Under the pieces are notes generated by a model. It was not told where the DNA came from and did not search any database. It saw nothing but the letters and a program-made list of their open reading frames with translations. 64,000 bases of DNA from NCBI GenBank assembly GCA_950097015.1, contig CATNEN010000041.1, forward strand, positions 2,232,001-2,296,000. The letters are read 5' to 3'. Below are positions 10,912-55,104 of the stretch, one piece after another. Positions within the stretch are counted from its first letter, which is position 1; each line of letters opens with the position of its first letter. The position numbers and the translations under genes are program-made. Source of the stretch: Macrostomum hystrix (taxonomy: Eukaryota; Animalia; Platyhelminthes).

Positions 10912-13900
10912 ATGAGCGTTTCTCTGAGGCTCATTGTCATATGCATTGCTGTGCTCGGAAATGGACACACCAGCCTCTGCAGCATTGATCTGGGTAAGAT
11001 TTCCGCTAGTAACTGCATGAGCAGCTTTTTTAACTAATGTGGCATGATGAGCTCGTACTTATTTGCCGGAACTTCAAGCTTGAAGTCATTTCTACAGAGC
11101 TTTTGATAGATTCTTTGAAGCTGTTCGAGCTTCAAATTATCACCGAACTTTTGTCACAGACGCAGAGGATGCGCCGCCTCTGGTGTCCTACGGCCCACAC
11201 CAGGTCAGGGCCGTCGGCACAGCTTATGCCGAGTTCCCGCCTGCGGCAGTGAAGCTCAGCTGGTCAACCGCAGGCCATCCAGCGCTCGCGAATCAGTCAT
11301 ACTTCAACGGTTACGCCACCTCCGACTACTTCCTGTTCACCTTCGACTTAGTCAACGACATTCGGGGCTACGTGATCGGCCGGGACTCTCCCGGCATCTA
11401 CGTGAAGACCTTCCAGCTCGCCTACTGCAGCTCGCCCGGATCAACACTGCTGAGCTACTCTGCAGGCTCTCATTACTCCCCAGCGCTGCTGCCTGGCATC
11501 AACAGCAGCGACATGAGCAACCACACCTACCAGCTTCCCTTCGGCAGCATCAGGGCGCGGGTGCTGAAGCTCACACCAGTCGACTTTGTTGGCAACAAAT
11601 CCATCAAGATTGAGTTCGTCGGTCTGCCCGTTCGTGAGTGAATTCAGGCTACTCCGAATTGTGCCGACGGTAGCCGCAGATCATTTTCGAGGTGCAGCTT
11701 GATTGAATTACCATAAATGATAACTGGCATAGGGGATGCTCGCTTACCCCTGCTTCACGAAGCCAACCCTTTGATACAGTACCAGTATAACGTCTTTAAA
11801 GATGAACAAATCAACCAGAGAATCTGGATTTTTTGGCAAAACATTTCGATTGTGATTTGATCGACTCAAGAACTTGACATCATTCTAGGATTTAGGCAGA
11901 CTAGGGCAAGTTTTGTCGAGGTTCCTCAAAATAAATTGCTCAATAGCTGCTATTCCACGCGGTCTCTCTGAGGACTAAGGTAGCAAATATACATTTCTCT
12001 CCTGTACTCTCCAATGGACTGAGTTTGAGGCTAGCCCATAGACAAGATAATCAACAGCAAATCATGCGAAATGTGGTTGTGCTTGGAGAACACTCCAGTT
12101 TAAACGGCTGCTGCTTTGGCTTTCAGAGTGCCCGCCCATTTCAACCTACAAGCTGACTCTGCCGGCGCCCAGGCAGGTCAACGCGACATCCTTCACACTG
12201 AGCACCAACAACAGCCAGACCGTCTGGTTCGAGGACCTCTATCATGTAACGAACGTGTCACTAACAGGAAACAACTGCACTCAGAGTCAGTCCATGGTGA
12301 TCACTTTCATCACTAACAATGGGATTGCCGTGGGTGACCCACTGGTGAGTTCTGTCTCCTGGCCACTTATGCGGGCCGAAAAGCCTACATATAGTGGCGG
12401 CAATAACTAGAAGAAGGATGTTGCGCTTGCAATTGGTGGGAACTTTTGCGAATCTCGCTTACACCTAAGGGCACGTTGAGTAGATAGCAAATAATAATTT
12501 TTTAACTTCATGAAATTCGCTAAGCGTCACAGCTTGGACACCTGCATCGGAGCATTTGAAGTATGGAAGACAATTACTTTTTTGAGAGCATTATTTCTTG
12601 AGCATTTTGTCAATGTGTTATTTTCTATAAATCGTTGAACTGTACAGTTTTGTAAAACAATTTGGAATAGGGCTTGATGTGAACTGTTTGGTTAAATAAA
12701 CGAAATGAAGGCAATCGATTGCGAATGCATGTTCTCTGTAGCAGCAAGAGGCCAAAAGAGATATCAGACACGGAGCTTCATCAGTGCATGCAAGCTACCT
12801 TTACTCCTGCTATTTCGATGCAACCACATTTTCAGACGCTGACGGCCAACCCGGAAGACATTATGGGCACGCTGTACCCACTGAACGCCACCGTCAACGC
12901 TGCCAAGGTCCGGGTTTACTTCCGAAGCAGAGACTGCGACAACGTTGAGTTCAAATTCTTCGGCTGCCTTGCCGACGGTGCGTCAAAATAAGCACAATCT
13001 CAGAATACTAATATGAGTTGACTTGATATTCAGCAACAGCCTGCCAGTCAATTGGCAGCATTGAATAGCGCCTCAGTTTTCGTCCATTATGTTAGACAGC
13101 CGTTATAATTTCCCCACGAGCTTTCCATTACTTTAATTTTATGTCTCTAGACAGAACCCTGCTGTTTTAGCTAGCCAAACTCTGGGACGTCTGTCAAGCG
13201 TGTTGTCAGAGGTGACAAGTCGCAGCTGAAGTGGAAGTTACCATTTGTTTCTTTCTGCAGCCTCTGTCTATTGTATTATTTTCCAGTTCAGGTTTTTTAA
13301 TTCCTTGAGAAGCTAAAACACTTTCAAAATGAGACCTGCTCCATGCCTGGGCCTGCATTCTGCCTCAGCCTTCTCCGGGCAGGAATGCATGGAAACTCTG
13401 GAAAGCAAACAGCACTGTGGGGCTCCCATAGTCCCACATTCTTTGCCATATGGTCACAAATGCTTTTTGCTCTACTTGGATGGACGACAACAATTGAAGC
13501 CATGCATTGACTTTTGAAGCGAAGCTTGCAGAAGCTTCTGATCAGCAGGTCGGGCCTTCCTCTGCTGCTACAGCTTTCTCATCTGTTTTGGAATCAACGA
13601 TTGCCTTCATCGATCAGTACAGGAAAGATGCGCATTGTGGCCCAGCTTCACACCAAGTCCCAAGTCCTGCACAGCTTCCCCCGCCCCTATATTGTCTTCA
13701 TCTGCGGCAGCTGAATCCAAGTCCTTGTTTGTCAGCCGCCTTGCGCGTGACCGGTCGAGTGGAGATTCTGCAGCTCTCGCTTATGCTACTTTAATATGCA
13801 GCTATGAGAAATCCAAGTGGGCCGGGTGGGCAGTGACTTCTGCAGCTGATTTTGCTGAAGGAAGTCGTTGGGGTAAACCAGGTGATGTAGCCTTAATTTT

Positions 13901-16900
13901 TGGAATGTCACTAGCGAGCCACTGAACCCGTTGCACAGAATGCCCGGCCTCGTCCTTCTACTTCAACGGTCAGTGCTACTATGCGGGCAAAGAGCCCCCG
14001 CGGCACCGGGCTCTGGGCCTGAAGCTCTGCCGAAGCGTTAACTGGATGGACAGAGGCGGCATATTTTTGCCGCGCTCCTTCGAGGACAACATAATCGTGA
14101 CCATGGCGGCCCTGCAGTTTGCCGGCTCACTGGATAGCACGTTCTTGGTTCACCTCGGCTTGACAAAGACCAGCAGCGGCTGGGTGAGCGAGGAAAAGCC
14201 TGGCTTGGCTTTAAAATGGAGCTTCTTTGAGCCGTTCCAGATTCAGCCGGAGCACACTGTAGTGCTGGCCAACCTAAGCCGTATGAGCTGGTGGGGCTCC
14301 GTCAACGCGTCCCTGCCCGCCCACACCATCTGCGAAGTAACTGCAGGTGATCCTTCGTAATAGCTGGAAAGGTGCCAATAAGCCGTAGCCAGGAGAGACA
14401 AATGCGTTGTTGTAGAAAAACTTTGCGAATGAAAATTTAGTTGCTTTCAATAAAAAAAGTATTTTAGCTAGAATAGAAGATTTAAGTGACAATATTGTCT
14501 TCATCCGCTAACCGGGAGCAGTTCCTCTTCCAGGCCGCAGGCAGAACCGAAGCTGCGATGAGCCCTACTTTCTGCCGGTGCCGGACAGGAGCTACGGCGC
14601 TGTCTCACAGTCGGAACTCAGCAAGTCAGCTGACAACATCAGCCTCTTTGACGCGACCAGGCAGTGTATGGAAGGCTCAGTTGCAGGCACCAGTTGCAAC
14701 TATGTAGTCCAGAACCAGACGCATTTTGCCATGTCGAATAAGCCCGTCCGAGGCTTCTACCCGTTCCAGAGCGAGAAGCTGGGCAGCTACACGGGCTTCT
14801 TCGTATTCTGCCGCTGTGAGTTCGTTTGCTGCCTGATTCTGACTCAACAACGGCTGTATAGACTGCACAGTGTACTACCCAGCTTGCCACATGGCTTGGA
14901 GCAACCCGTGTGTACCACAAGCCCATGCCTACCACAAACCCCCGCCTACCACAAACCCATGCCTAACACAAACCCCTGCCTACCACAAACCCATGCCTAA
15001 CACAAACCCCTGCCTACCACAAACCCCTGCCTACCACAAACCCCTGCCTAACACAAACCCCTGCCTACCACAAACCCCTGCCTACCACAAACCCCTGCCT
15101 AACACAAACCCCTGCCTACCACAAACCACTGCCTAACACAAACCCCTGCCTACCACAAACCCCTGCCTACCACAAACCCCTGCCTACCACAAACCCCTGC
15201 CTACCACAAACCCCTGCCTACCACAAACCCCTGCCTACCACAAACCACTGCCTAACACAAACCCCTGCCTAACACAAACCCCTGCCTACCACAAACCACT
15301 GCCTAACACAAACCCCTGCCTACCACAAACCCCTGCCTACCACAAACCCCTGCCTACCACAAACCCCTGCCTACCACAAACCCCTGCCTACTACAAACCC
15401 CTGCCTAACACAAACCCCTGCCTACCACAAACCCCTGCCTAACACAAACCCCTGCCTACCACAAACCACTGCCTAACACAAACCCCTGCCTACCACAATC
15501 CCTGCCTACCACAAACCCCTGCCTACCACAAACCCCTGCCTACCACAAACCCCTGCCTACCACAAACCCCTGCCTACCACAAACCCCTGCCTACCACAAA
15601 CCCCTGCCTAACACAAACCCCTGCCTACCACAAACCCCTGCCTACCACAAACCCCTGCCTACCACAAACCCCTGCCTACCACAAACCCCTGCCTACCACA
15701 AACCCCTGCCTAACACAAACCCCTGCCTACCACAAACCCCTGCCTACCACAAACCCCTGCCTACCACAAACCCCTGCCTACCACAAACCCCTGCCTACCA
15801 CAAACCCCTGCCTAACACAAACCCCTGCCTACCACAAACCCCTGCCTACCACAAACCCCTGCCTACCACAAACCCCTGCCTACCACAAACCCCTGCCTAC
15901 CACAAACCCCTGCCTACCACAAACCCCTGCCTACCACAAACCCCTGCCTAACACAAACCCCTGCCTACCACAAACCCCTGCCTACTACAAACCCATTCCT
16001 ACCACAAACCACTGCCTACCACAAACCCCTGCCTACTACAAACCCATGCCTACCACAAACCCCTGCATACCACAAACCCCTGCCTACTACAAACCCATGC
16101 CTACCACAAACCCCTGCCTACCACAAACCCCTGCCTACCACAAACCACTGCCTACCACAAACCCCTGCTTACCACAAACCACTGCCTACCACAAACCACT
16201 GCCTACCACAAACACATTTTTACAACAAACCCCTGCATACCACAAACTGCAGTTGGCCCAGAAAGTACAAGCCCCACTCCTCAAACCAGTCAAATTCATT
16301 TTGTTGAGAGAGAAAGAGTGCTTTTCGTTCCCGAATATGCGAACCTGAAACGCAAACCAACGGAAGCTTTACTTGTAAAGGCCTGTCGTATGATGGCAGT
16401 TGCGAGCTGGCGTACCCCTAACTGAACAGCTTTCGTGTGCGCCATCTGATTAAACTTAACAATGAAGGGCCGAAAGAAGTGTGAGATTTCATTCTGTATT
16501 TATTATTATTATTACTAATCTTAAGCGTCTGATGTCGAGAAAGTGTTCGCAAACTTCGCCAAGACAACTAGAACGTCCAACCCGGCTGTGGGAACGACCG
16601 GCGTACCTCTAGCAGCGGGCAGTTTCTGGAGTGGCACTGAGCTTGTCGTAAGTGGCAGCTGCATTCCATTAGGAGCAAATTAGTTAAGCTATTTAAAAAT
16701 GTATAAAATACGTGCTGATCAATGTAACGCATGGCCATGTGACTGTGCTCTTGCAGATGAAGTTGCCAGCAAAGTATCTGCTAGATAGTGTGCTCATGAT
16801 GTGCTACATTTCAAACTCAATGTTTGGCAGCCAGGATCTCAAATTTGTAATGGAATTTTTTAACTACAATTTCAACTCGTGGGAAATGACGTCCAACGAC

Positions 16901-19900
16901 TTCAAGAGTGGAGTGCCGGTGAGTCTTGGACCAATTCGTGTGGCTTCCAATCATTGTTACGAATTTTGTTACGACTCCTTCAACCTGGAATCCAACGAAG
17001 ATTTAAAATGCCTCCCGCGCTACGGAAATTGAAACCGAGTCTTATACCATATTCGCAGGCACCGGTGGTCATCCCGAAGGCATCGATATTCACTCCGATG
17101 TACTACCTGATCGTCAATGCCGCCTTCAGCGACAGTCTTCGATTGACGACAACTTGGGATCGCAGCGTTGGGATCAAAATGGATCTGTATGCAAGAATGA
17201 AGAACATAAGCGGTAGGACAGTTTTTACGAGTATATTGAGAATAACGTGTGATACTTGCTCACATTGTACTTATGTATGTACATGCGACATTTAGCAGCC
17301 CTCGCTATGCAAGAGAGTATCTCTCCTTTGGTAGACTTGACTCTGTCTCGTCTCTGCCAGTTAGCTAGCAGCCACAACACTTTAATTGATATACGTGAAG
17401 CTGATCCAAATTGGATTGCGATCGCTTTTACACTATTTATTTGCTACTCTTTCACAAGTGCAGTTGGGTGTTTCTTTTAACGCAGAGCTATCTTCGACCG
17501 CCTGCAATCGCTCGCAGTCAGTGGTGCTGGAGCATCCTTACTTCGGAGTCGCCACGCTGCCCTGCTATCGAAGCTCCATTGTCGTGTACCAGAAGCTTTC
17601 GGCAAGCCTCGAGACCGGACGAGCTGCAGTCGACTACCGTCTCGGTTTTGCTCTGAGCCGGCCTGCCATGGACTTCAACTTCGTTCAGGCTGACCAGCTG
17701 AGCTTCTGGACTGGACTGGACTTCTTAGAGCAGTTTCCGTCCTACTTTGCGAGCCAATGGCCTCTGACTCTGAGGCTGGAGGCCTCAAACGCACAGGGAC
17801 TCGGCAAGTATGTGGAGTGCAAGGAGTGGTGGGTCGGGTCCCGCGCAAGCGGCTACCGAATGCATGTGAAAGACTGCCAGACCGGCACTCTGGATGAGTA
17901 CACTTTGGTTGAGCTCGACAAGGCGCAGTTCGGCTTATTCTCTAATCTGTCTTGTGCGCAGCCGCTTTCTTCCTGGTGGCAAAGCCAGTGTGATTCCAAA
18001 AACTTCATCAAGCTGACAGCGGACTCAAATGGAGCGTCCAGGTGGCTTCCGGACCTGCCGGCTGACAGTGGCATGCGAGTTCGCATTCGCTTGTTTCCGC
18101 CTGGCATGATCCCCGGTGAGGCTGTTTTGTTTTCATTCCCGCAATGAAATACTGCTAATTAAAGTAAAAATTAAGAAAGTAGAAGTCATGCCGCAGCTAT
18201 AAAAAAGTTAAAAATACCTATCTACAGCCAGCCTTTGTGCGTATCAGCATGATGACATCCTCATTTCCTACAATTTAGACTCACATCGTGGCGAAATGGG
18301 TGATCCCTGCACAATGGATATCAACTGCAGCAACCAGACGGTCTGCATTCCACAAGGGTCTTCACTCACACCACAGTGTGGGTGTGCCAACCTACAAGAT
18401 CAGAATTCACAGACATGCGACATCACTGTGGACATGAGCATGTTTTTTATCAACGAAACGTTCAATATTCCGCCGATTCGAGGAAGTGCAAGTCAGTTCA
18501 CTGCAATGATTGGAATGAAGTATGCCAGCGGTAGCGCTGAAATACCAGATTCTGCTCCGCCAAAGCCACTCGCGAGGTTCTATTCTTACTTTCTTAACAA
18601 GTCATCCAACGTCTACCCCCCGGTCGATCAGCAGTTGTACTATCAGCACAGTCCCGTGAGAGTAATCGAAGGAGACATTTTCAAAGGACGCAGATTACAC
18701 GATGAATTCTTCTTCACCATCTCAGCCAACTTCAGCATGCCGAAAGGCGGGCAGTGTGTCTCTGCCTCTTACCTGTGTGTCGGCTTTATCGCCACGGAAA
18801 ATGAGACCGTGCGAGACTCAAACCCAGGAAACAATGCGATATGCAAAAATATTGATAGCCAAAAGGTGTGCCAACCAGAAGGTGACACCGCGCTGCTGAA
18901 CCTAACCCTGCTGCACCTGAGCCCAAGTCGGCTTGTGCGGCATCAGAACGTGTCTGCTGCATACCTTCTCACAATTCAAATCAAAGATATCAGCCGACCG
19001 ATTTTGGATTCTGTGACTGAAGACAATTTCGCTGTTTACCTATACCTGGCGACAAGCGACTGTCAGAAAGCTGGAGGCAGCGACAAGACTGTTAAAAACT
19101 GTTTAGCCGAGTCTCTTGATCGCTTTGAGATGCAAACGGAAAACCGAACTTTGCTTAAGATCGGGTACAGCAGTGGAGATGTTTTCACACTGAGTGTTCA
19201 GCCTCCGCCTTTTGAAATCAACCAGACTCAGTGCAACCGCACCTCGCACTTCTGTGTGATGTTTACTAGCGCTGTTAACTCGTCATACTCGGAGCGAAAC
19301 TTCAGCAACAGTGTGGCTTGTCATCCGGTGGAAACGTTCTGCATGATTTGTAAGTGTAACAATGCAGCTGCTTCAATTTTTATCTAGAGCTGATAGAACA
19401 CAGAGTGATTTTTTGTTTTTACTGAATGAATTTGGCTCACGTTAGATTCGTCTTAGTACCTGTCAATACGACAGGAAATTGAGAATTTCATGAGATTCGT
19501 GAATATCAAGTCTTGAATGTCTTGGGCCTTGACGAACAGGTAGACTTCACATTCAAGCCTTGAAATACTAAGGTTTTAGTGGAGTTTTCCACACAAACTG
19601 ATTGGTTCAATTAGGCTGCTCACTTAGCTAATTCCTTACCTGATCATTTTGCATGCAACCATGTGCCTTTTTAGTCTCCGACGTCTCGCTGGAAACTGTA
19701 GCCCTGATTCCGAATACGACAGACCCCTGGGTTCCTGAGTACCGCCACACTGCTTCGTTTTCGCTCGGCGTGCGCCTGGTCAGCGGCTCGAAGATCGACC
19801 CTGTAGTATCGCCCAGTATCAACTTCCAGCCAGAAATTTCGATTATATTTCCCAACTCCTCCGGCCCGCTACTAAACATGGAGAGCGTTGAGTGCATCGA

Positions 19901-22900
19901 GAAGGACAGGACCTTGGGACTTCAGGAAGGTCAAATTGTGTACGTCTTTTGCGACGCCACATTTTTCGTAAGCTTCCAACAGTGCACAACGAAGCAAGTG
20001 ACTCTGCGATTCGGAATGGTGAATTCGGTCAATCCGAGTTACATTGACGCGAACGAAGCGAATAACTGGAAGGATGTTGAAGTTATGAATTTATTCATTT
20101 GCATTGGTGAGATCATAAATGATTGGGTATTCTCGTAATTTGCAAGAATCCAACCACCTAGAATATTATTTCTAATTTTTTGTAGGACTCGCGATTTCCA
20201 ACCCGAGAGTTGTTCATGACACTTACATCTTACCCGATAAGGCAGCAAAGTTTGTCGTACAATGGGACTCTGGGACATATTTGGATTGTCTCATATCCAG
20301 TCAGGATGGTTACAATGCAACATGGAACTGGCAGCGGAACGGATCGATTGATAGCTACCGCGCCTACTCGTTGTCCGTCCAGCACCAATTCACTGGATCT
20401 TATGGAGACTATATTGTTAGCTACAGTTGTGCAAACGAAATTAGCAGCTACAGCGAAAGCAGATCCATCCTATACAATCCTAACCCGATTGATCTCGTCA
20501 TTACGGCTTTGTACGAGCGGCTGCCCGCTCCAAACAACGTAACTTTTGCGTTCGGTATGAAAACTCTGGGCAGTGGATATGTGAGACTAAACTGCACATT
20601 CACATTTTACACGGGCAACGTACAGTCGTATCAAGATCTCAGGTTCTACTTCGGCACTCCACTGAGCATTTCCTACATATATGATCCTGGGAAGTCTGTC
20701 GTAACTTCCTCCGTGCAGTGCTTGAACCCGTGCGGAACGTACAGCAATTCCTACGAATTTCGACTTTACACACCTTTCGAAATCGAAGGTGTTGAAATTC
20801 GGGTCAACGGGACCATCTTGCGCACTAATGAAAAAATCTCAATCCAGATCACGGTTCAGAACGGAACTGACGTCACTTACACCGTAACTATGACTGATGC
20901 AACTAGCAAAGTGATTGTGCACCCAGAGCCCGTTTCATACACACAGTCAATTAATGTTACGCATGCTTTCAATGTGCCTGGGGTCCACCGAATACATGTC
21001 CTCGCCTCGAGTCCGATGAATCGGGAAAGTAATGAATTTTCTGGAATTCTCGTGCAGAATCCCATCGCATCAATGTCTCAGCTGCCACATCAATATGCTG
21101 CGATGCCTAGCATCAACTTCTCGCTAATTCATGGGCCTGTTTTGCCGACAAATGTCACATGCGCAGTAAAACTTCAACGTGAACGCGACCATCAACTACA
21201 AACAATAGCATTTACAAAGTCAAACGAGTTTGTTCTTTTTAACTGCTCTCCGTTGTACATCACAGAGGAAATGCTATTGTCAGTCCATTGCTGGAATCTC
21301 GTCAGCGAGTACCGTAGGAACTCCACTATCGTGTGCGAAGAGGCCGTAGCAGGTCTCGAAGTAAACGTCAGTGAGACGTTCATTGAAGTCATGCAAATAA
21401 TGAACATTACAATCAATGTGTCAAATGGAACAACAGTGACGTATACAACTAATTTTGGTGATTCGTCGCCGAGTTCTGTGTACGTTCATCCAAGCAAGTA
21501 CGCATCTAGCAGTGCAGTACAATTGGCGCACTCTTATGCAACTGCGGGTAACTATGCCGTCTCGGTGAACACATCGAACCCCGTGAGTTCACAGAAAGTT
21601 CTGCTTCAGCCTATATCAGTGCTTAGGCAACTGATTAACGTCTCTGTAAACTACAAGGACACAGTTAATTGGCCCGTGGAAGGCGCGCGCTTCATTGTCA
21701 ACAATATTCCGGAAATGCAAACCGAACTTGTTGTATGCGATTTTCAGTTTTCAAACTTTGGATCCAGAAGAGTTTTTATACAAAACCTGACTAGAAATTC
21801 TGATGCCGTCGTCACATTCGCTTATTCCTTCGAGGCTGTGGGTACACAGGAAGTAAGCATGTGGTGCCGGAATCCAGTCACACCTGATGGAGTGAGGCGC
21901 AATTTTTCACTTGTGGTTTTGAAAGAAAATGTAAAAATTGCCAACTTCACATCGAATGGAACCGTATGGAACGGTGCACCTACTATATTTCTGCTTGATA
22001 TGCTTAGCCTTCCAAACGAAACCTGCATTGAGGTGTTTTACAATGATTCGCTCGTTCCAACTGAAATGCTGGGGTCAACGGAATGGTGTCGTGTTTTTGC
22101 AGATCAAAAAAATGCCAACTATAGTACAATCAATCTGTCTCTAACTAGAATTACGTGGAGTCGAGTCTTACCAACCGTGGGTGTAATTCCTGTTTCAGTT
22201 TTTGCCTACAACAACGTCAGCAACGATTCAGCGCAAACATGGGCTATTGTGATTGACATTCCTTGTGACAAACCGAAGGTAAGACTGTTCGACTCTGCAT
22301 CAACTCTTTTGCAGGCCTCATCTGTGCTGCAAAAAATGAAGTCAGAGCCTGTCAACTTGACTGCGATTGCTCAATATAACTGCTCAAAGCCGACCAACAT
22401 GAGTATCCTCTGGACCGTGGTGTCAGTGCAGTCGTCTGCCCAGCTTCCACTCTGTACAAGCGGCGGCACTCACTGCGAGATACTGCATCGGATCCTACCA
22501 TATGGACTGTACAATGTGTCATTCACTGCGGAACTGACGGCGGACCCTGCACTGAAGGAGACTGTGTGGATCTTGCTGAACATCACAAAGACTCCTTTGA
22601 GTCTTGGAGCGATTGTCGGTCTAGAAGCCGTGTCGTTCAATCAGAGTTTTGTGATGACCGCATCCATGTCAGCAAGAGATCTTGATGTTGAGGACGGTAA
22701 TCTCAGCGGCATGACATTCCAATGGAGCTGCTCGAGACAAGGTGAAGCAGATTCCACCAGCATCATCAGTGTTCCCTCACAGAATGATGTCAGATCAATT
22801 TCTGTTCTGAGAGGATGCTTCGGCAATGGACCAGGAGTCATTCTCGTTGGGAATGCAAGCAGTGCGGGTTCTCTCACAGTCAACTCATTCGAACCTATTT

Positions 22901-30576: not shown

Positions 30577-31200
30577 GATCCAGAATTTTTAAAAGCATTG
30601 ACAATTTTTTTAGCTGTTTCTATTGAAAGGGAAAACAGTCCTGAATATATCCTTGACTCTGCTTCTATTTTGTTTTCTTTGTTCATTAGTTTTTTAGAAT
30701 TGTTTTTTTCGATGCACAGCTTCTGAAAGCGATATTTTTAATGATTTTCTCTATGCAATTGTACGATGTCTTGTTTGAACCTTATAGAAAAAGACCCATA
30801 CTAATCAGTAGAATCAGCAGAATGACAACTGTGCGAGCGGGGTGAAGCCTTTCAGAGCGGTCTACTTTTTGCTGACAGGAATTTAAGAACAGTTAGGAAC
30901 AGGCAGGTGTCACAGACAGGCATGTTTCCCACCTTTTTTATTCCCCTTGTAGATCCGCCGATCACATTTCCACTTTTTTCAGGCTTCTTCTTCTTATATT
31001 TTCTTTTAATTGCTTTAGGCAGCACATGTTAAGCTATTTATTTTTTTCTGTAATTGGCCTCAAGTTTGCACTTAGTCTCTCTGTCTTTTGCAAATAAAGT
31101 GAATTTCCTCGCAGTTGAGGTATCTGCAATCCTACACTTGCAGTTGATGATTCTTCATTGACTTCGACTTCCTTCATTGCCTACGGATTGACTGCTGTCC

Positions 31201-31831: not shown

Positions 31832-31993
31832 TATGGAATCCCTGGAGCAGTATTATTGAGTATCTTGGAAACATTTTCTCGTTTCATTGGAAAATAAGTC
31901 TATTCTTAGTGAGCTTTTGGCTTATTGTCTTGCCATATTTCCATATTTAATCCTTTTCACGTCCCGGTTTCATTCACGGCTGAACACAGCCGC

Positions 31994-32128
31994 GATTCTG
32001 TACCCGGTGGACGGCGAGTATCGCAGCCTGATGCAGACGCTCATCACCCAGCTGTCTGTGATGCTTGGAAAGTTCAATGCCACCTTCGAGGACAGCCGAT
32101 CGAAGTTGTCTGTACAAGGTTCTGTTCT
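31994..32128 (+). pseudogene. Short orphan fragment of the polycystin pore exon (YPVDGEYRSLMQTLITQLSVMLGKFNATFEDSR), broken by a small insertion
   Basis: Near-identical to 30053-30187; interrupted by TCGAAGTTG after GAGGACAGCCGA, then the similarity ends. Confidence 0.85.
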
Positions 32129-38725: not shown

Positions 38726-38761
<36 letters not shown>

Positions 38762-44700: not shown

Positions 44701-47700
44701 CAGTCGTCTGCCCAGCTTCCACTCTGTACAAGCGGCGGCACTCACTGCGAGATACTGCATCGGATCCTACCATATGGACTGTACAATGTGTCATTCACTG
44801 CGGAACTGACGGCGGACCCTGCACTGAAGGAGACTGTGTGGATCTTGCTGAACATCACAAAGACTCCTTTGAGTCTTGGAGCGATTGTCGGTCTAGAAGC
44901 CGTGTCGTTCAATCAGAGTTTTGTGATGACCGCATCCATGTCAGCAAGAGATCTCGATGTCGAGGACGGTGATCTCAGCGGCATGACATTCCAATGGAGC
45001 TGCTCGAGACAAGGTGAAGCAGATTCCACCAGCATCATCAGTGTTCCCTCACAGAATGATGTCAGATCAATTTCTGTTCTGAGAGGATGCTTCGGCAATG
45101 GACCAGGAGTCATTCTCGTTGGGAATGCAAGCAGTGCGGGTTCTCTCACAGTCAACTCATTCAACCTATTTCCGAACGGAAGCTATGTGATCCGAGTTCG
45201 CTTGACGAAGGACAGCAGAGAGGTTTGGCAGTCGAAAACAGTGTTCGTCCAGTCACAGCAAAGGCCGGTTGGTCGTCTGAGCTGTAAGCAGAACTGTGAC
45301 GTCAAAGTTTTAGCCAAGAAGCCGTTCGTGTACAACATTGTGTGCGAGCAGAACTGTGGCCACAAGTTCTTTGATGTGAGCAGCAACTTGACGATCGCGC
45401 GCCTAGATGCCAAGGGAAACGAGCTAGAGTCAGCGGGTCACTTAGCAAACGGTCAGGAGTTGTCCGTTGCAGCCGGCACGTTGATCGAGAGCTCGTTCTA
45501 TCGTCTGAGAGGACAGATGTGGAATCTGGGTCAAGAGAGCACGGAGCTTTTTGCCAACGTGATTGTCAATGGTCCGCCTGTCGGTGGTCACTGTTATATG
45601 GATCCGTCTGGGGGTAAGTCGTGATGCGTGGTAAAGTGGGTTTCGTGCTTTGTATTCGTATTACTTCTCCTAGTTATTTTTTGCTTTTACTGCTTGCTAA
45701 GACTATCGTATTTTTTGGTGCCCTTTTCAAGAATTTGACGGCCTATTGTGAAGTAATTAGCTATAGTCCCTCTTATTGAAAGTATGTACGAGCGTAAGAA
45801 GCTAGAAATTACATCAAATGCAGTTAGATGTACTACTGCCAGTGGTACATCTGAGTTTATTTCACGGATATTCAAAGGCGGTGCACTTCACTGAACTATA
45901 AGTCGCAGTATGACATTACCGTTCAGTGTTATTTAATGTTGTTATTTAATGTTAGCTCGTACGCACACGAACTTGTCAGCACTGTGCGTGCACCGTTGCT
46001 GCTGATGTTTGTGTCTGTATCACGCGTGGCTTGCGGGCCATTGGGGTGGGCCGTATTTCTGGGCCCAAATCCTCACGGTCGGCCAAACCCTTATGTTCTA
46101 GACTACAACGACCATAAATATAAGGAGCCACGATTTCAAACTGGCTGTTCATTCGTGTGTTTTAATTCTGGCCTTCTTTCTGCCTTTCAGTTATTACACG
46201 CTGTAACTCGCAGGGGTCACTTAAACCAAAACTTCTACCCCTGCCAATGCTGGTATTCATTTCATAGCCTGGTGAACTGAAGCAGTGGTTAATCAGTGGG
46301 GTCATGAATCATGAAGGGGTCTCACTCAAGGATGCAGTTTTTTCTCTGGGCTGAGGTTCGGTCGGTAATCCGAAGCAACATTCACCGGCGAAAACCTACT
46401 CGAAAACCTAGCTTCATTCACTAGTTGATAATCAGGAATTTATGACACATTTAATTTCAGCAATTTCATTCAAGACCAACGTGCAGCTCGTCTGTACAAA
46501 CTGGACGGAGTTTGGTGCGACAGTGGCTCCCCTAGTTTATCGGTCAAAGCTATACGTATCTGAATCTGGAAAGCAATACGCACTATTCAATTCGCCCAGC
46601 GCTGTGAGCCCACGAGTGCTGCTCCCTGTTGACGAGCCTGGCACGGCCGTGGTCGAGTTCTCTGTGGCAGATTCCTTTGGCGCACAGCAAATGGTTAACG
46701 TCAGTTTTCAGGTATTGTCTGTGACATAAAAAAGAAAAAATCACTTTTTTAATCTTGATTTATTGCGTCTTTTTCTTCGTGAGATGACAAGTGAGGAGAA
46801 ATCTCCCACCAGGTTGTTAGTCCGAAACTGCTAGCAAGTGAGTTGACGGCACTGCTTGACAGTCTGCTGAGCGGGAACGACTCAGCTGTAGCCTTGTTTC
46901 TAGCGGTCGGCGACTATGAAACGGCTCTTATATCGATGAGGTCGATCGCCTCACTGCTGAATTCCTACAACGAAGACGGGGAGGGTCCCTCAGTCTCCCA
47001 AGAGAAGCGTGACGCCTTCAATCAGAAAATGGCGCAGGTGATTTAACAAGTTCGACTTTTACTTTTTTCAACTTAACTATGCTCTGTTAATTTCGCAATT
47101 TTAATGCGTATTTTTACTACTCTCTGACTCTTTGTCGTCTCTAATTCATTCAAGATGGAGCGAATGTTCGTAGGAATCGAACTAAATGCGTTCAGTTCTT
47201 TAAAAGGGAAATGGAACGAGAGCTTAGATGCCATTCTCGCTGATTCTTCAGTGGCGGTCCCTGTGGTGCCCGTGAGATCCGATTATGATCCGGGCACTCT
47301 GGTGCTCTGGTTCCATTTTCAACTTATTAGAAGTAGATATGTACTAATATGTAGTATTTAGTATCTACTAACTAATAATAAAAAAATAATAATAAAACGC
47401 AACCCGCCGGCCACGCAGTGGCCCGAAAAAGGGGGGAAAGCGTCAAAACGCGCTTAAGGGCTAGTTCGCGGACATGCTTCACTCCGTCAGCCTGGCTCGG
47501 GGCGCGCGCGTCGGAGAAGAGCAGGTCGATATAACGGGCCGATCGTCCCTGTCCGCGCCTGCGCGGTCCCTGCAGAGTCCACAGAAGCACATCCTGCAGC
47601 GGCTCAGGGCAGTAGGCCTCAGCCTTGATCACGTGCCCAGCCAGCCGCAGGCGCCAATGTCTCAGCAGGTCTGAAGGCCGCGTCAGTCGCGCTCGCTTGT

Positions 47701-50700
47701 ACAGTGAGTCGGTCGTCTCGCTTCCTGGGTCACGGTGGGCGCCAAATGCAGCGAGAAGCAGGTCCGGATGTGTCGCGTTGAGCTGCCCCTCGAGCGCCTC
47801 CGTCAGAGTCCAGGTCTCCGCATTACAGAGCAGCACGGTCTCAACGACCGCCTGGAACAACCTGGCGCTGTCCGTCAGCGCGCCCGAAAGCAGCACCGTG
47901 CGCACTGATCGAAAGGCGGCCCAGGCCTTGCCGCGCCGTCTCACCAATTCGTCGCTATACTAACTAAATAGATAAATAGGACGTGGCATGGTGCATATTT
48001 GTCTAGCTACGGTAGTAATCGGTACACATTTGTCATGCGATAGGGTTCATGTAGCTGTCAGAGTGTTTAGGACTTGAGCTAAAATACTCCGCCCTGATGA
48101 GAAAACAAAAGGCCAAAAAGCTAGATGCTCTCCTGACAGCTGTAACTTAAGCGAAAGAATCGCGAGAAATATTCTCACGGACTACTTAAGTAGATGGTTA
48201 GTGTACTTCCGAGCAGTAGAAATGGCAATTTAGTAGTCAGTTTTTGTTTACTCGTACTTTAATGTAGTCATATAAACACATTGTCTAATGTTAACTTTTG
48301 CACATACACGGCACAAAACTTTTGTTTAACCTTTACAGCTACGATGCCAGTTCCTTAACTTTGTCGCAGCCTTTCCCACGGATTCCAACTCTGGTCTGGC
48401 GATCGCCTCTAGTCTGCTGCTATCGGGAGTTGAAAGAAGCAGCCAGTTAGATCTTCCCGGACAGGTACACGCGATCCAGCAATGTTCCTCACACAGCCAA
48501 TCTCAGTTAATACAGTATGACAAGTGAGAAGCCAGTTTTAACTCCATTTAGTACCATTCCTTAATTTCTAGGAGGTGGCTGCAGGAGTGCTGCAAAAAGA
48601 TATTAGCGAAGCGTGGACTAAAGGCCGGAACTTATCGAAAGAAGAACGAGAAAAAATTCCAAATGATCTGCTGAACTCGGGCATAAACATTTGGAATGCC
48701 TCTGTTATTTGGACAAATAATAACACTGATCCTAGCGCAGTAAAGAGAGTCATGGTCAAGACGCTTGGATGCATCGACTCCATAGCACTCCTGGAGTTAG
48801 AGTTCAATAACAGTTTCACCAAATTCCGACCCGGCTTTGCACTGACTGGCATCACACAAGACGCTCAGAATGCGAATGTGACTGGGGCAACAATCGATAC
48901 TGACTTCGGCACCATCTCGCTGCCGAGGTTCACAGCGGATTTTTTATCAGGAAGATGCAGAATCACAGCCATGATAAGCACATCGAATCCATACTTTTGG
49001 AGCGCATCCGAATCTCCAGTCACAACATCGTATTTTCGTGGCCATTCTCAAGGATGCGCATTCCTGGACTTCCCATCACAAAAACGGTCAAAGCGCTCAG
49101 TTTCCTCAACACTGACCTATCAGCTCCAGCTTAAGTCGTCGAATGAGCCGCTTCTTCGAGTGCTTGGGACGCCCACTGACAAGTGGCTCATGATGTATCA
49201 CCACTTCGTGGCTACAGGAGACGCTGTTCAGCTTGTCGTTCAGCCTGATGCGAACAACCAACTAGAACTTTTTGTTAACGAAGGCACACTACCAGATCCT
49301 CAGAATCACACACTGTACAGATTGGTTCCGCAGTCCTTGAATTCGACCAGCGGCAAAGCGAGTACTCAGGAGCTCATTCTGCTTCCAGCAAGTCTCTTCT
49401 CAGTCAACCAGAGTGTGTTCATTGGAATGAGGAGGCTGGGCTGCTCAAGAGATCCATCAGGTACTCCCAACTGTGGCAACACCACCTTGTCCTATCAGCT
49501 GAGAATCTCAACCCAACTTTGCTACTCATGGGACAGCGTGGCCGAGGAGTGGCGAGTGTTGGAAGCAACAAGCTGCCAGGTGAGTGATCTGACACCACTG
49601 AATCACGTAACAGTTCTTGTGGATGACCAACTATTGGTAAGATTTAACTCTGTCTCACAGGCCAGCGACCAGACTGCGGTGGGAAGGCCGGCCTTCAAGG
49701 TTCACCTGTTCGGCAGCATCGGAGCTGGAATCTCATTTATGCCAAACACCATCAACTTCGGCAAGCTGTTTGAGAACTGGCAGGGCAAGCTGAGTGAAAG
49801 CAGGGCGGTGCTGTCAGTCGTGATCGCTCTGTGGGTGCTGTTCATTCCGCTGGCAGTGATCCTGAGGCGCATGGACCTCCGAGATGCACAGAAGGTGAGC
49901 AGTCGCTTCGACTGAGTCTGCCGCTCGGAATCTGGCTAATGCTCACTCGTTCACTTTTCAGTTTCGATTCTTGCCTCTAAAAGACGAGCAGCAGAGTAAG
50001 GAATTCGTCTACAAGATTGAAGTGTTCAACGGGTCTAACAAGGGAAATGAGGTTCCACTCGGAGTCTTTATCTCAGTCAAGGGACTCAATGCAAATCAGC
50101 TGGTGAGAACTCTGCACGATGGAGAGAGACGGGTGAGAGTTGTTTCAGTGCACCTTCAATGTACGATGATAGAGATTCAATTGCAAAATCTCAAGTACTT
50201 CGTTCATTTTTAGAACTTTTTGAGAGGAACTGTCGACAACTTCTTAATGACTGCCGATGAGCATCTCGGAGACATTCGGTTCATCTGCCTGACATACGAC
50301 AAGACAGAGTCGGGAGCAGGACGCTGGTATGTCGGTCGCGTGATCGTCACGGATTGCAGTACGGACTACAGATATGTCTTCCTGGTGGAAGACTGGCTGA
50401 GTCCTGGCGTCGATGCTTCAGTCAACTGCGCCTCCTCACTCGACCTAAAGTTCTCGAAGAACCTCGTTCGCAACCACCTGAGCAGAAGATTGCAGGACGA
50501 CCACATCTGGCTCTCAATGCTTCGGCGAAAGGTGGACACAAACTTCAGTAGACTGCAACGTCTTGGAGTGTGCTGGAGCTTGCTGTTCATGACGATGATC
50601 GCGAACGCCATGTGGTGAGTGTCAGGCTGGCTGGATTGACTAACGAGGTACAAGCGTATCTAACATGAGCTTTTAACGTATAAATCAGAGGAAATAAACA

Positions 50701-53257
50701 AACTCAATAACGTGAAACTAGGTACAAAGTCGCCGACAGCTCGTCAGAGGCCTTCCGAATCGGACCAGTCAAGGTGTCCTACGGATCTCTCATCACATCC
50801 ATTCTCGGTGCGCTCACAGTGCTGCCGGTTTCCATGGCGACGGTGCTGTTGTTTCTAAAGTCGAAGCGGCAGCCAGACCACACTGAGGCAGCACAGCGGT
50901 ACCAGCCTGAGTCGAGTCGCTGTCGGCGAGTCATCAGCAGCGATGCGGCCACAGAGGAGGAGCCCGGAGCTGAGGAACAGAAGAAGAGCTGGTTCTCACA
51001 GCTGCTGCTACCGCACTGGTGCCAGTACGTTGGCTGGGTGCTGCTCATCGCGAGTGTTCTCACGGCTGGGGTCTTTATCGTCTTTTACGCAATGGACTGG
51101 GGCAAGGACAAGTCTGAGGACTGGCTGCTCGCGTTTTTCTTGTCCTTCTTCGAGACGGTGCTTCTCATTCAGCCGCTCAAGGTGCTGGCCGTCGGGCTGG
51201 TGCTGGCTCTGCTGATGAGGAAGGACTACGACTCCATGGACTCTCGCTGCATCCGAGTTCGCGAGCTGCAGGACAGCCGAGGTCAGATATTGTACCAATC
51301 ATCTCTTACCATCAGTGCTGTGCTCATGTCTCTCATGCTCAGACATCCTGCTCACTGTTCACTTCCCCCCCTGCTCACTTCCAGAGAAGTTCACGACGTT
51401 ACAAGATGTCCTGGCCTCTCAGTCGAACGACAAACTCAGAAAAAAGGCAAAGTCGACGGCAATCAGCATCGGTCTGAACCTGGCGTACCTATTCCTCCTG
51501 TACTGTGTCTGTTATGGATCGATGGACCCGATCGCGTTCCATCTGAACAACGGCCTGAAGATGCGACTCACTGTCAACCAGCCGAGCCCACAGTTCAGTC
51601 TCGACAAGGTATGTACTCGTAATCAGCTGTGAAATCCGACTATGACAAAGTGACATCTCAAGCAAACAACAAACCGAATTGCAGGTGCAAAAGTGGGAAG
51701 ACCTCCATGCGTGGTTCAATCACACGATTTTGCCGAACCTGTACCCCACACTGGCAGTGAATGGCAGACCACTGAGTGAGGCTGAACAAAAGTTCATTTC
51801 CGATGGTGTGGGATTCCGCCTTGGCCAGGTGAAGTTGCGACAGCTCAGGGTGCGTCCGTTGCGTCGAGACTCTCTGGCCGAGTCTGGCGAGTACAGTGCC
51901 CGCACCGAGGACCGCAGCTGCTACGGAATCGGCTGGAGCACTCAGCTACTCTGCAACAAGAGCGCGAAAGGCCTGGTCGCAGCTTTCCAGTCAAAGCAAG
52001 TCAGCCCGTGGCCGACTTGGGGCACCTACAACTCTTACAGTGGAAGTGGCTACGTGCTCGATCTGCCCAACAACTTCTCCGAGGCTGCCGCGTTGCTGAA
52101 TGAAGCCAGACTGCAGCATTGGATCGACAACTACACCAGAGCAGTGCTGGTCGAGTTCAGCTTGTTCTATCCCGACACGAACTTCTTCACCTCTGTGTCC
52201 ATCCTGACTGAGCTGCCTCCGTTCGGCGGCGCCTTGAGCTCCGCCAGTCTCCGATCGACGAGTCTCTATCGCTACATCGGTGCCAGCGGAGCTCTCAGAC
52301 TGTGTGCTGAGCTGCTGGCCGCCGCCACGACGCTCATTCTGCTGCTGTTGCAGCTGCGAGCCTGCTGGCAGCAGGGACTCTCCAGTTACCTCTCCAATGC
52401 TTGGAATCTGTGCCGCTTGCTCACCAGCCTCATCATGATCGCTGGACTCATCTTCCTCCTGCTGCGCAGCTTCGCCACAGTCGCAGCTCTCGAGTCCATG
52501 CAGAACTCCAACACTGGCAGTCTGGAAACCGTCATGTTCTTCGACGAGTCGTTTTACTACTGCCTCGGAATCGCCATGTTCTTCGTGCAGATCGGCTTCC
52601 TGAACCTGGTCCGCTACTCCCGCAGCCTTGCGCACCTGTCGGGCACTCTGAGGAACTCCGTGTCTGAGCTGACCTCCTTCTTCTGGCTTTTCCTCGTGAT
52701 CTTCTTGGCCTTCGCCTTCACCACATACCTGGTTCTGTGCCCGGTGGACGGCGAGTATCGCAGCCTGATGCAGACGCTCATCACCCAGCTGTCTGTGATG
52801 CTTGGAAAGTTCAATGCCACCTTCGAGGACAGCCGAAGCGCTCTGTACAAGGTTCTGTTCTTCTCCTACACGTTCACCATCGTATTCATCGTGCTCAACA
52901 TCTTTGTTGTGCTGCTCAACGATAGCTACGCAGACGCCACGAAGAGCGACGAGAACAGTCAGCAGCAGGAGGCCTTCCAGGTTATTGACACGATTTTTGA
53001 ATCATTGAAGTCCGTGGTTCGCCCAAGTCGTCAGTCGCCATACATTGACGACGGTTACTCCAATGGTAAGTTTAAAATAAGTTCTTGTCCTCAATCTTTT
53101 CATGCCTGTTAGGTGGACAAGTAGGCAGTTTTCGCGAATTCGTCGATTGACAAAGGGACTGATTTTCACGAAATTCTCAGGTGCGGAAGCTCGCGCCATA
53201 GTTCTTCTGGAGAGGCTGGATGAGCTGCAGCAGCACGTGGGCAGCCACCTTCGCTGA
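33711..53257 (+). CDS. Polycystin-1-like receptor-channel, paralog 2; same exon/domain layout, with four apparent +1 frameshifts (~37458, 40646, 41801, ~43221)
   Basis: Signal-peptide exon 33711-33792 (82 nt, same length as in paralog 1). Exon-by-exon homology with conserved intron phases through to HVGSHLR* at 53255-53257. Confidence 0.88.
38383..38783 (+). mobile_element. tRNA-derived SINE, near full length, in an intron of paralog 2
   Basis: A/B boxes and a long (ATT)n tail. Imperfect TSD TACAAAGCGCGC (38371-38382) / TACAAAGTGCGC (38784-38795). Confidence 0.87.
47376..47957 (-). mobile_element. 5'-truncated non-LTR retrotransposon (RTE-like) 3' fragment in an intron of paralog 2
   Basis: ORF 47372-47947 has post-RT motifs (RLFQAVVETVLLCNAETWTLT, RLRLAGHV, RRRGQGR) and a (TTA)n-like tail. 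Perfect 10-bp TSD TACTAACTAA at 47366-47375 and 47958-47967. Confidence 0.85.
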
Positions 53258-53800
53258 GATCCAGAATTTTTAAAGCATTGACAATTTTTTTTGCTGTTTC
53301 TATTGAAAGGGAAAACAGTCCTGAATATATCCTTGACTCTGCTTCTATTTTGTTTTCTTTGTTCATTGGTTTTTTAGAATTGTTTTTTTCGATGCACAGC
53401 TTCTGAAAGCGATATTTTTAATGATGGGGTAATAAGGGGTGAAGCCTTTCAGAGCGGTCTACTTTTTGCTGACAGGAATTTAAGAACAGTTAGGAACAGG
53501 CAGGTGTCACAGACAGGCATGTTTCCCACCTTTTTTATTCCCCTTGTAGATCCGCCGATCACATTTCCACTTTTTTCAGGCTTCTTCTTCTTATATTTTC
53601 TTTTAATAGCTTTAGGCAGCACATGTTAAGCTATCTATTTTTTTTTCTGTAATTGGCCTCTAGTTTGCACTTATTCTCTCTGTCTTTTGCAAATAAAGTG
53701 AATTTCCTCGCAGTTGAGGTATCTGCAATCCTACACTTGCAGTTGATGATTCTTCATTGACTTCGACTTCCTTCATTGCCTACGGATTGACTGCTGTCCC

Positions 53801-54429
53801 GGTTAGCGCGTTTGCCTCTCGCACCGAGGTACCAGAGTCCGATTCCGCGGCGAGGCCACATTCATTTGGGGTGCAGTCGCGGCTAGAAGGAAACACTTCG
53901 ATACTCGTATTTTCCAGTGGGTCCATCCACAAGTTTAAAGATCGCAAGGCGCTTTTGGCACTCATTGTTACGACTGAGTTGAAGATCAATTAGAGAATTA
54001 TCAAGGCATTGATAAGTTTCTGAAAGTTGCTTGAGTCCGTTAGATGATGATAATTTTGCTAATAATAATAATAATAGTAATAACTGCAGGGGGGCTGCGG
54101 GCAACGGCACATCATTTGGTGACACTGGACCCGCAGCCAGCGATGGGAAATTTCACATATGGGAAATTTCAATGAGTCAGCGCTGACTCATAAACAAATA
54201 CACACGCACACAGATACTGTACACAGGTACTCAAACAGGTGTGTACATCTGCCCTGAATTTCTCATCGTCAGGCAGTGTACACTTCACTGCCTTGGAGGT
54301 TGGCCCTCAAGGGCGTAAATTGCACGACAAGTCATCAAGCCTTCTCTCCGCGGCTGCGCCTCAAATGAATGTGGCCTCGCCGTGGAATCGAGCTCAGGGA
54401 CCACGCTAACCGCACTGCCACCCACCTCC
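53801..54429. mobile_element. Duplicate of the tail-to-tail SINE pair (53801-53890 on +, 54060-54429 on -)
   Basis: Near-identical to 31201-31831. Confidence 0.8.
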
Positions 54430-54602
54430 TATGGAATCCCTGGAGCACTCGAAAGTATTATTGAGTATCTTGGAAACATTTTCTCGTTTCATTGGAAAAT
54501 AAGTCTATTCTTAGTGAGCTTTTGGCTTATTGTCTTGCCAAATTTCCATATTTAATACTTTTCACGTCCCGGTTTCATTCTCGGCTGAACACAGCCGCGA
54601 TT

Positions 54603-55104
54603 CTGTGCCCGGTGCACGGCGAGTATCGCAGCCTGATGCAGACGCTCATCACCCAGCTGTCTGTGATGCTTGGAAAGTTCAATGCCACCTTCGAGGACAG
54701 CCGAAGCGCTCTGTACAAGGTTCTGTTCTTCTCCTACACGTTCACCATCGTATTCATCGTGCTCAACATCTTTGTTGTGCTGCTCAACGATAGCTACGCA
54801 GACGCCACGAAGAGCGACGAGAACAGTCAGCAGCAGGAGGCCTTCCTAGTTATTGATGTTATCGTCAAGTCCTTCAAAGCAATGTTCCATCCAACTCGTG
54901 AAGCGCAGTGCCTTGGTGCCGACGTGGAGATTGGTCAGTGGAAGTACTTTAGACGCTTGAATATTTTTCGCCTTTTTTCACTGCACTGGCATATTGTTTC
55001 GAATATTTTTCTTACTTTCAGATGCAGAGCTCACCGGGCAGGCTGTGGATCTGATGGGCAAGCTGGACGAGCTCGGCCTGCACATGACTCAGCTGGCTCG
55101 ATGA
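54603..55104 (+). pseudogene. Orphan polycystin 3' fragment: pore helix + S6 + a divergent two-exon cytoplasmic tail
   Basis: 54603-54843 is near-identical to the channel exon, then diverges. Phase-1 intron 54934-55021 (gtcagt..tttcag). Last exon DAELTGQAVDLMGKLDELGLHMTQLAR* is homologous to GVEASAIVLLERLDELQQHVGSHLR*. Confidence 0.8.

Follow-up and report, generated by a model that had tools for sequence, protein, structure and literature searches.

The window, a stretch of 64,000 nucleotides from the genome of Macrostomum hystrix, contains two adjacent PKD1/REJ-type polycystin genes in tandem, A and then B. Gene A, a polycystin-1-like (PKD1/REJ-type) receptor-channel by its Pfam matches, extends from a signal-peptide exon at 10912 to ~30573. 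Its 3' end is approximate: the open reading frame of the channel exon stops at 30431, and a possible short final exon runs on to ~30573, with the alignment of M. lignano P0001 reaching 30496-30573. Gene B (33711-~53254) was recognized as the tandem paralogue of A from Pfam PKD and REJ matches, a signal peptide, colinearity and junction phases. About 24 coding segments of A are colinear with B and with an outgroup paralogue, O, and the exon order and intron phases of B are those of A. Both genes, like the parts and relics of them described below, lie on the plus strand. Exons were searched individually, and per-exon alignments were concatenated only for the four-taxon trees.

Pfam identifies PKD (2.1e-16), REJ (6.1e-15), PLAT, Polycystin_dom and PKD_channel domains in A, with one or more PKD (Ig-like) repeats preceding REJ; in B it identifies REJ (1.6e-33) and PKD (1.5e-13). 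The PLAT/LH2 domain of A follows the first transmembrane segment, TM1. Its Pfam match (9.7e-06, at 27540-27935) covers profile positions 46-106, and by eye the N-terminal part of the domain is found in the preceding small exon. The C-terminal channel is represented by Polycystin_dom (TOP; 6e-35) and PKD_channel (2e-23) matches at 28998-30428, and the M. lignano homologues carry the name PKD_channel proteins. No Pfam match to a GPS was detected in A or B. Directly before TM1, however, stands KVHLFGSIGAGISFMP, which by eye resembles the PC1 stalk but has F instead of the T/S of HL^T/S; we regard it as a putative GPS-like motif. The remaining N-terminus of both genes gave no Pfam match at E<=1.

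One ectodomain exon (17488-18114 in A, with its counterpart at 39110-39736 in B) had been labeled as a fibrinogen-related domain (FReD) in the preliminary description. The label holds at the level of a profile but not for A and B singly, neither of which has a Pfam hit at E<=1. Fibrinogen_C (PF00147) is matched by six of nine aligned paralogous exons (best 2.6e-22), and a profile built from the alignment of these exons matches structures of fibrinogen, ficolin, tenascin and angiopoietin chains (best 1.9e-18). The FSTxD...GGSGWWY motif is mostly lost in A and B, whose FReD is divergent. At least 10 FReD-bearing polycystin loci are present in the genome.

The two genes had been described as a mosaic of diverged and ~99% identical blocks. 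We reproduced this mosaic by self-BLAST, MAFFT sliding windows and base-level boundary alignments. Block 1 is the 3' part of the REJ-domain exon, at 22186-23334 in A and 44458-45605 in B (1.15 kb, 99.6% identical); over its 1149 bp, the copies are separated by 4 substitutions and a single 1-bp indel, a total earlier put at about five. Block 2 occupies 26488-32136 in A and 49168-54737 in B (5.65 kb). It begins in the middle of exon 19, which encodes the C-terminal part of GAIN, the putative GPS-like HLF motif and TM1, and proceeds through PLAT, the TM exons and the channel exon, taking in all introns, the 3' untranslated region and 1.7 kb of flank. Up to the channel-exon stop, its two copies differ by 10 substitutions in 3.9 kb (0.25%). 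The shared 3' flank, said to carry a few indels, is ~1% diverged and does contain several, for example 93 bp versus 10 bp at 30746. Both blocks are ~99.6% identical, introns included, and their divergence is equal (Fisher p = 0.53). We also asked whether the flank of block 2 differs in age from its genic part: the comparison gave p = 0.0007 over all sites but p = 0.14 over neutral sites, and we make no such claim. Between the block copies there are substitutions as well as indels of 2, 4, 7 and 93/10 bp. Hence, the copies were assembled separately, in agreement with the earlier argument, made from substitutions, against simple copy collapse.

Inside the blocks, dS is ~0.01 or less (0.012 and 0 for the two halves of block 1) and introns are identical, whereas outside them dS is saturated and introns are unalignable. 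Saturation is already seen immediately upstream of block 1 in the same exon. At the edges, a few bases suffice for identity to climb from ~60% to 100%. The boundaries had been reported as abrupt and as falling within exons. Abrupt they are, and the left ends do lie inside exons, but both right edges required correction: that of block 1 stops 6-9 nt short of the exon end, and so is barely inside the exon, while that of block 2 is non-exonic, 1.7 kb beyond the stop and within a relic of a channel exon described below. Exact register is kept at three of the four edges; the right junction of block 2 is non-homologous. When differing sites were shuffled in a Sawyer-type test, none of 10,000 shuffles reached the identical runs observed in the REJ exon, exon 19 and the FReD exon (497, 729 and 61 bp; the longest shuffled runs were 69, 74 and 56).

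The FReD exon contains older tracts, nested within it. The ~96% identical tract noticed previously maps to 17662-~17846, with 7 mismatches in 185 bp and a dS of 0.11. A second older tract, at 17512-17661, has a dS of 0.46, and the rest of the exon is saturated. There are thus three age classes of tract, with dS of ~0.005, 0.11 and 0.46, which bears out the suggestion that conversion had recurred at different ages.

Most A/B exons share only 37-58% of their amino acids, with saturated dS and dN/dS of 0.14-0.47. This range describes the exons of the N-terminal ectodomains, whose strong divergence had been noted before. Between the two blocks of A lies an unconverted spacer (23335-26487, comprising an intron with a minisatellite and exons 17-19a; B counterpart, 45606-49167). 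Here the genes are diverged again, as reported: amino-acid identity between exons is 44-51%, synonymous divergence is saturated and introns cannot be aligned. In the ectodomain, dN/dS is 0.14-0.47, which indicates purifying, not diversifying, selection. The converted segments are the most conserved of all when compared with O (Mann-Whitney p = 0.0002).

Separate trees were built for the diverged and the homogenized parts. Diverged exons group B with M. lignano P0003 (support, 85/90), and block 1 and the C-terminal exon group A with B (support, 83-90), each from four taxa only and with AU p = 0.13-0.18 for the alternatives. Since an (A,B) clade for the diverged exons stays unrejected by the AU test (p = 0.14), these sequences suggest, and do no more than suggest, that the A/B duplication is older than the split from M. 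lignano. Polarizing the block differences with O and M. lignano yielded too few informative sites. A third-party donor was sought across the genome. The nucleotide queries were block 2, the two spacers and the two outer flanks, and the protein queries were the FReD and channel exons; none retrieved a copy closer than A and B themselves.

Downstream of B, within an open frame at 54492-55229, lies a relic of the 3' end of a channel exon (54588-54944; 119 codons covering the pore loop, S6 and C-tail). Its first 256 nt are 98.8% identical to 52733-52988, and the remainder matches at ~50% of amino acids. Gene A is followed by a truncated copy of this relic, 140 nt long with a 4-nt insertion (31996-32136), and block 2 stops at its 3' edge. 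The sequence past the relic of A is unique in the genome, as are both outer flanks. Neither the relic nor the ending of block 2 inside A's partial copy of it had been noticed in the preliminary description. We considered the relic as an alternative last exon and rejected this: by eye, there is no donor/acceptor pair of matching phase, and the A copy is frameshifted and truncated.

The shared flank also includes a dispersed repeat (31462-31804 in A, 54060-54402 in B). The flank elements had been taken for SINEs; they are instead MITE-like, with ~90-bp inverted ends. The A and B copies of this element are ~100% identical to each other but only 79-84% identical to copies elsewhere in the genome. 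Hence, the flank was copied en bloc. A 57-bp minisatellite repeated 18 times (23429-24463) lies in the spacer intron of A, 95 bp 3' of block 1, and has no counterpart in B. We regard it as a candidate break site, which would make A the recipient.

As assembled, the pair carries four +1 frameshifts, one in A and three in B, that had previously gone unnoticed. In A, an extra G at 22891 in the REJ exon, which is the single indel of block 1, leads to a stop at 23016; B and O are open here. The apparent frameshifts of B are at 37458 (exon 5/6), ~40646 (exon 10/11) and ~43215 (exon 13/14), and at each of them a single frame continues unbroken in A, O and M. lignano P0003. The assembly was produced by canu from PacBio CLR reads, with Arrow and Pilon polishing (PMC10468722). 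Local consensus problems do occur in its paralogous arrays: one copy of a related array has 58 singleton 1-bp indels. The four frameshifts are probably consensus errors of this kind, and 1-bp frameshifts in a CLR-based assembly should not be read as pseudogenization without read or RNA support. Cross-copy read correction or polishing could also have inflated the level of identity inside the blocks. In a search for independent contigs or RNA, a word search with exon 19 gave no match, and the channel and REJ exons matched only M. lignano models.

What produced the mosaic? Repeated non-allelic (ectopic) gene conversion between A and B is, in our judgment, very probably the best explanation. Identical introns and synonymous sites inside the blocks, set against saturated dS outside them, point to a non-reciprocal exchange of sequence. 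A and B would be an old tandem duplicate pair, both kept under purifying selection until their ectodomains were only ~50% identical. On at least three occasions since then, parts of one copy would have been overwritten from the other. The older occasions would have left two tracts in the fibrinogen-like exon (dS 0.46 and 0.11), and the recent exchange (dS ~0.005) would have left both the 1.15-kb REJ-exon tract and the 5.65-kb tract that starts in mid-GAIN and ends 1.7 kb beyond the gene. The pair of recent tracts may reflect one discontinuous event or two near-simultaneous ones.

Several features of the edges suggest how conversion could have proceeded. The left ends, in register inside exons, are consistent with homology-guided strand invasion. 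The non-homologous right end falls within a relic that is complete only downstream of B, a single structural argument from which we infer that the latest direction of copying was probably from B to A. Conversion took place at the segments with the highest remaining similarity, so the homogenized half of the genes would be a by-product of homology-dependent repair and not a part designed to be constant. Two caveats apply to gene conversion as an explanation: the flanks of the edges are ~60% identical, and this is a poor substrate for classical homologous recombination; and the right junction of block 2 lacks homology.

Perhaps the near-identity was made, or exaggerated, by the assembly? Under canu correction, Pilon cross-polishing or repeat collapse, the real copies might be diverged or the blocks single-copy. 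The source is noisy PacBio CLR reads, and the 58 singleton indels of the related array demonstrate a failure of polishing in paralogous repeats. However, cross-copy polishing and correction blur only sequences that are already ~97% alike or more, and a passage from 60% to 99.6% at base-sharp, in-register edges is beyond the reach of cross-polishing. CLR reads trivially span the 1.15-kb block between its unique flanks. Because the blocks retain substitutions and indels of several bases, they are not a single consensus entered two times, and the type of error actually seen, the unpolished indel, lowers the likeness of copies and does not raise it. An artefact is therefore highly improbable. Unequal crossing-over or segmental replacement, giving an A-B hybrid in a three-gene array whose third gene was mostly deleted and left the relic, would account for a diverged channel 3' end downstream of B. 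Such a history, or alternatively a microhomology-mediated template switch that pasted the 3' half, would also suit the non-homologous right junction and a tract as long as 5.65 kb with its flank. Yet a crossover predicts shared intergenic DNA downstream of the 3' half of A, and both flanks are unique. Nor does it explain why A possesses the first 140 nt of the relic, why there is a separate 1.15-kb block 1 with diverged sequence on both sides, or why three of four edges are in exact register. We consider these alternatives unlikely.

The preliminary description had gone further and likened the pair to a variable/constant receptor family, in which the channel is held constant by conversion and the sensor is left to diverge. 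This amounts to a selected modular design: conversion would be favored, holding GPS/PLAT/TM/pore identical while selection diversifies the ligand-binding ectodomain. Indeed, the long tract spans the entire signaling and channel half, the ectodomain is far more diverged, and it includes a lectin-type FReD module of the kind carried by the other polycystin loci counted above. However, this reading was not supported. Only two genes are involved, and the channel half has undergone essentially a single recent event; the ectodomain (REJ, FReD) itself holds block 1 as well as the older tracts; and 1.7 kb of non-coding flank is part of the long tract. The ectodomain dN/dS values give no sign of diversifying selection. 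That the converted segments are those most conserved against O is what homology limitation alone predicts; hence, conversion appears limited to surviving homology, and nothing here suggests it as the cause of conservation. Along a related four-copy array on contig 29, identity stays evenly at 97-99%, without a mosaic, and other pairs in the family have no homogenized C-terminus in common. A constant C-terminus across the whole family was likewise rejected, given the even similarity along the contig-29 array and an identity of no more than 54% for other paralogues. In a variable/constant family, several members would carry a homogenized module while their variable modules diversify; here, the module is common to two genes only. 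We judge a selected design to be very unlikely.

M. hystrix is a selfing, highly inbred flatworm. Possibly, though we regard this as doubtful, it owns an unusually permissive ectopic repair that pastes kilobase tracts repeatedly between ancient paralogues whose flanks are ~60% identical. If so, base-sharp mosaics would be expected at many receptor loci, and the polycystin pair, whose junction is one-ended and marked by a relic, would be no isolated conversion but the footprint of a lineage-specific mode of templated repair, homeologous and in part non-homologous. For gene conversion between A and B, our preferred reading, the consequences are nearer at hand. A and B look young from the C-terminus and ancient from the N-terminus, which matters for annotation and trees of Macrostomum polycystins and of other tandem receptor families in this genome; trees and dating should therefore proceed segment by segment. 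In a small space, the locus also illustrates conversion restricted to the best-conserved modules of old paralogues, with three tract ages and one junction that probably records direction.

How do A and B compare with known systems? In PKD1, PKD1L1-3, PKDREJ and the sea-urchin suREJ, the canonical order is PKD repeat, REJ, GAIN/GPS-like, PLAT, polycystin/TOP and PKD channel, and A and B follow the same order, with a putative GAIN/GPS-like part. They differ from that family in having a divergent fibrinogen-related domain in the ectodomain and, by eye, in a GPS-like motif that reads HLF and so has no Thr/Ser nucleophile. Conversion is itself familiar from the polycystin-1 superfamily: human and chimpanzee PKD1 and six pseudogenes, PKD1P1-P6, on chromosome 16 show non-allelic conversion tracts, detected as identity runs with GENECONV, and concerted evolution (PMC2564946). 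Copies with disabling changes occur in both systems, in A and B as the apparent frameshifts of the assembled sequence. However, the copies in primates arose by recent segmental duplication and remain ~97% or more identical along their whole length, so that conversion acts on uniformly similar DNA. The flatworm pair is ancient (dS saturated, ~50% of amino acids shared), its tracts are islands with base-sharp edges, and both copies have long been under purifying selection. A and B also recall the mosaic ectopic conversion of receptor and immune clusters (Teshima and Innan-type models, PMC3924837), where conserved modules are likewise homogenized while ligand-binding segments diverge, tracts include introns and boundaries are abrupt. 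From those clusters they differ in gene family, in the unusual length of the tract and in a 3' end that is non-homologous and flagged by a relic of an exon. We conclude that A and B are very probably a clean case of familiar gene conversion and not a new receptor principle or design.

The two tandem polycystin-1-like (PKD1/REJ-type) genes, A (10912-~30573) and B (33711-~53254), both on the plus strand, have the canonical Pfam domain order: PKD, REJ, PLAT, Polycystin_dom and PKD_channel. A signal-peptide exon opens each gene, in agreement with the starts proposed in the preliminary description. The N-terminal exons had no Pfam match, even at E<=1. The label given there to the fibrinogen-related domain (FReD) exon (A 17488-18114, B 39110-39736) holds at the profile level. 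When the A and B exons were aligned with seven paralogous exons of this genome, six members of the alignment matched Fibrinogen_C (best 2.6e-22), and the alignment profile matched fibrinogen, ficolin, tenascin and angiopoietin structures (best 1.9e-18). At least 10 polycystin-1-like loci in the M. hystrix genome carry such an exon in the ectodomain; to our knowledge, this combination is not found in described PKD1/REJ proteins.

We checked the proposed block map of A against B by self-BLAST and by MAFFT alignment in 100-column windows, and it was borne out. Block 1, in the REJ exon (22186-23334 in A, 44458-45605 in B), differs by 4 substitutions and one 1-bp indel. Three of the 4 substitutions fall within 17 bp (22683-22699), a cluster for which a multi-nucleotide change, a micro-tract and patchy mismatch repair are candidate explanations. 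Block 2 (26488-32136 in A, 49168-54737 in B), which includes the 3' part of exon 19 with a GPS-like 'HLF...' stalk and TM1, has 10 substitutions over the 3.9 kb ending at the channel-exon stop, and its 1.7-kb 3' flank shows ~1% divergence and several indels. In base-level alignments, identity at the edges 22186, 23334 and 26488 steps from ~55-65% up to 100% in the space of a few nucleotides, with A and B in exact register at each. Outside the blocks, 20 homologous coding segments are 37-58% identical in amino acids, the FReD exon (80%) excepted; dS in unconverted coding segments is >1 or not computable, dN/dS is 0.14-0.47, and introns are unalignable. All A/B sequence outside the converted tracts is thus old. 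The identical runs observed in the REJ exon, exon 19 and the FReD exon were reached by none of 10,000 shuffles of the differing sites. Within the FReD exon, dS is 0.11 at 17662-17847, 0.46 at 17512-17661 and saturated in the remainder; together with the two recent blocks, these nested classes imply at least three tract ages at the locus.

How old are the paralogues themselves? The nearest paralogue in the genome, O on contig 39, has the exon order of A and B. Its ectodomain is 25-45% identical to theirs, and its PLAT, TM and channel exons reach 52-58%. Across five diverged exons taken together, the M. lignano gene model P0003 and B are 56% identical, versus 53% for A and B. In the maximum-likelihood tree, B pairs with M. 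lignano (support 85/90), while block 1 and the channel exon group A with B instead. Since the alternative topology survives the AU test (p = 0.14), it is likely but not proven that the duplication predates the M. hystrix-M. lignano split. A has evolved somewhat faster than B (174 versus 127 unique changes, p = 0.007). At the end of the FReD exon, the final 61 residues (17929-18111 and 39551-39733) show the opposite affinity to every other diverged exon, P0003 being nearer A (82%) than B (74%); either a conversion on the M. lignano side or a chimeric model of its gene may account for this.

Because identity extends to synonymous and intron sites, selection is excluded as the origin of the blocks, and, judged from the sequence, only recent non-reciprocal transfer would fit. 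Polycystin loci are numerous in this genome, and a search of all 220,453,370 bp (42 contigs) found no closer relative of A or B than each other in any segment, which rules out a third-party donor for the diverged parts. Could the islands be products of assembly? The assembly derives from the inbred line SR1 by PacBio long reads, canu, Purge Haplotigs and Arrow plus Pilon polishing (PMC10468722). As assembled, an extra G at 22891 disrupts the REJ exon of A, and B has three +1 shifts (~37458, ~40646 and ~43215) at sites where A, O and M. lignano stay in one frame. On contig 29, four tandem polycystin units at ~50 kb spacing are 97-99% identical throughout; copy 3 (3651901-3681900) carries 58 singleton 1-bp indels in ~17 kb (38 insertions, 20 deletions), and each sister copy at most 4. 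These indels mark a locally unpolished stretch and are direct evidence of residual consensus errors in places in this CLR assembly. The four frameshifts in A and B are probably assembly errors; young pseudogenisation of one or both genes is a possible alternative source. Residual consensus error is the main caveat on the exact identity level of the blocks. Such errors cannot make base-sharp 99.6% islands within 60% surroundings, and multi-base indels persist between the block copies. We conclude that the mosaic is real and that A and B are ancient tandem paralogues subject to recurrent ectopic gene conversion.

The two blocks are equally diverged (Fisher p = 0.53) and may stem from one discontinuous event or from two near each other in time. 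Downstream of B lies a relic of the channel-exon 3' end (54588-54944, 119 codons); over 256 nt from its start it matches B's own channel exon at 98.8% identity, and its tail retains ~50% amino acid identity. In A the relic is cut to its first 140 nt; block 2 ends exactly there, and beyond it both sides are unique. That the relic is longer in B and cut in A at the block edge favours copying from B to A, in which the left end would have been homology-guided and the right end non-homologous. The relic sits in an open frame (54492-55229, 245 aa) extending well beyond the homologous part; no in-phase splice sites for this frame were found by eye, and the relic is therefore probably non-functional. 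An A-only minisatellite of 18 57-bp units, ~99% alike (23429-24463, in the intron that follows the REJ exon), lies 95 bp from block 1 and is a plausible break site; its translation gives a spurious 'tify' Pfam score.

The elements previously called SINEs proved to be MITE-like, ~340 bp with ~90-bp inverted ends (31201-31292, 31462-31804, 38386-38750, 2652-2994 and 53800-54402), with >3,500 candidates genome-wide at first look. The flank copies are ~100% identical between A and B and 79-84% identical to the thousands of others; hence the flank moved together with the gene. A ~1.3-kb array of 17-bp repeats in an A intron (14903-16247; GC skew -0.44, strong strand asymmetry) is absent from B. A B intron holds a ~590-bp dispersed repeat (47373-47956; at least 40 genomic copies, 77-91% identity) that overlaps a minus-strand ORF of 191 aa. 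Further tandem arrays lie outside the genes at 326-1776, 2341-2614, 4168-4481, 55779-56315 and 61867-62235 (periods ~44, 4-12, 27, 53 and 21 bp).

Why were these segments converted? The exons best conserved against O are the converted ones: their median identity is ~45%, that of the unconverted exons ~36% (Mann-Whitney p = 0.0002), as homology-limited conversion predicts. The channel half was most likely converted because similarity had persisted there, which reverses the causal arrow of the preliminary description. Its reading of a variable/constant receptor family is not supported, given this ranking, purifying dN/dS in the ectodomain, converted tracts within the ectodomain, and the contig-29 sister array, which is uniformly similar and without mosaic.

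Our literature search found no paper linking Macrostomum and polycystin conversion. The general pattern of a conversion mosaic is textbook (PMC3924837), and in primates, PKD1 and its pseudogenes provide a documented case of gene conversion between copies of polycystin-1 (PMC2564946). The mosaic of A and B, likewise a product of conversion between polycystin-1 copies, is a further instance of this already known process.
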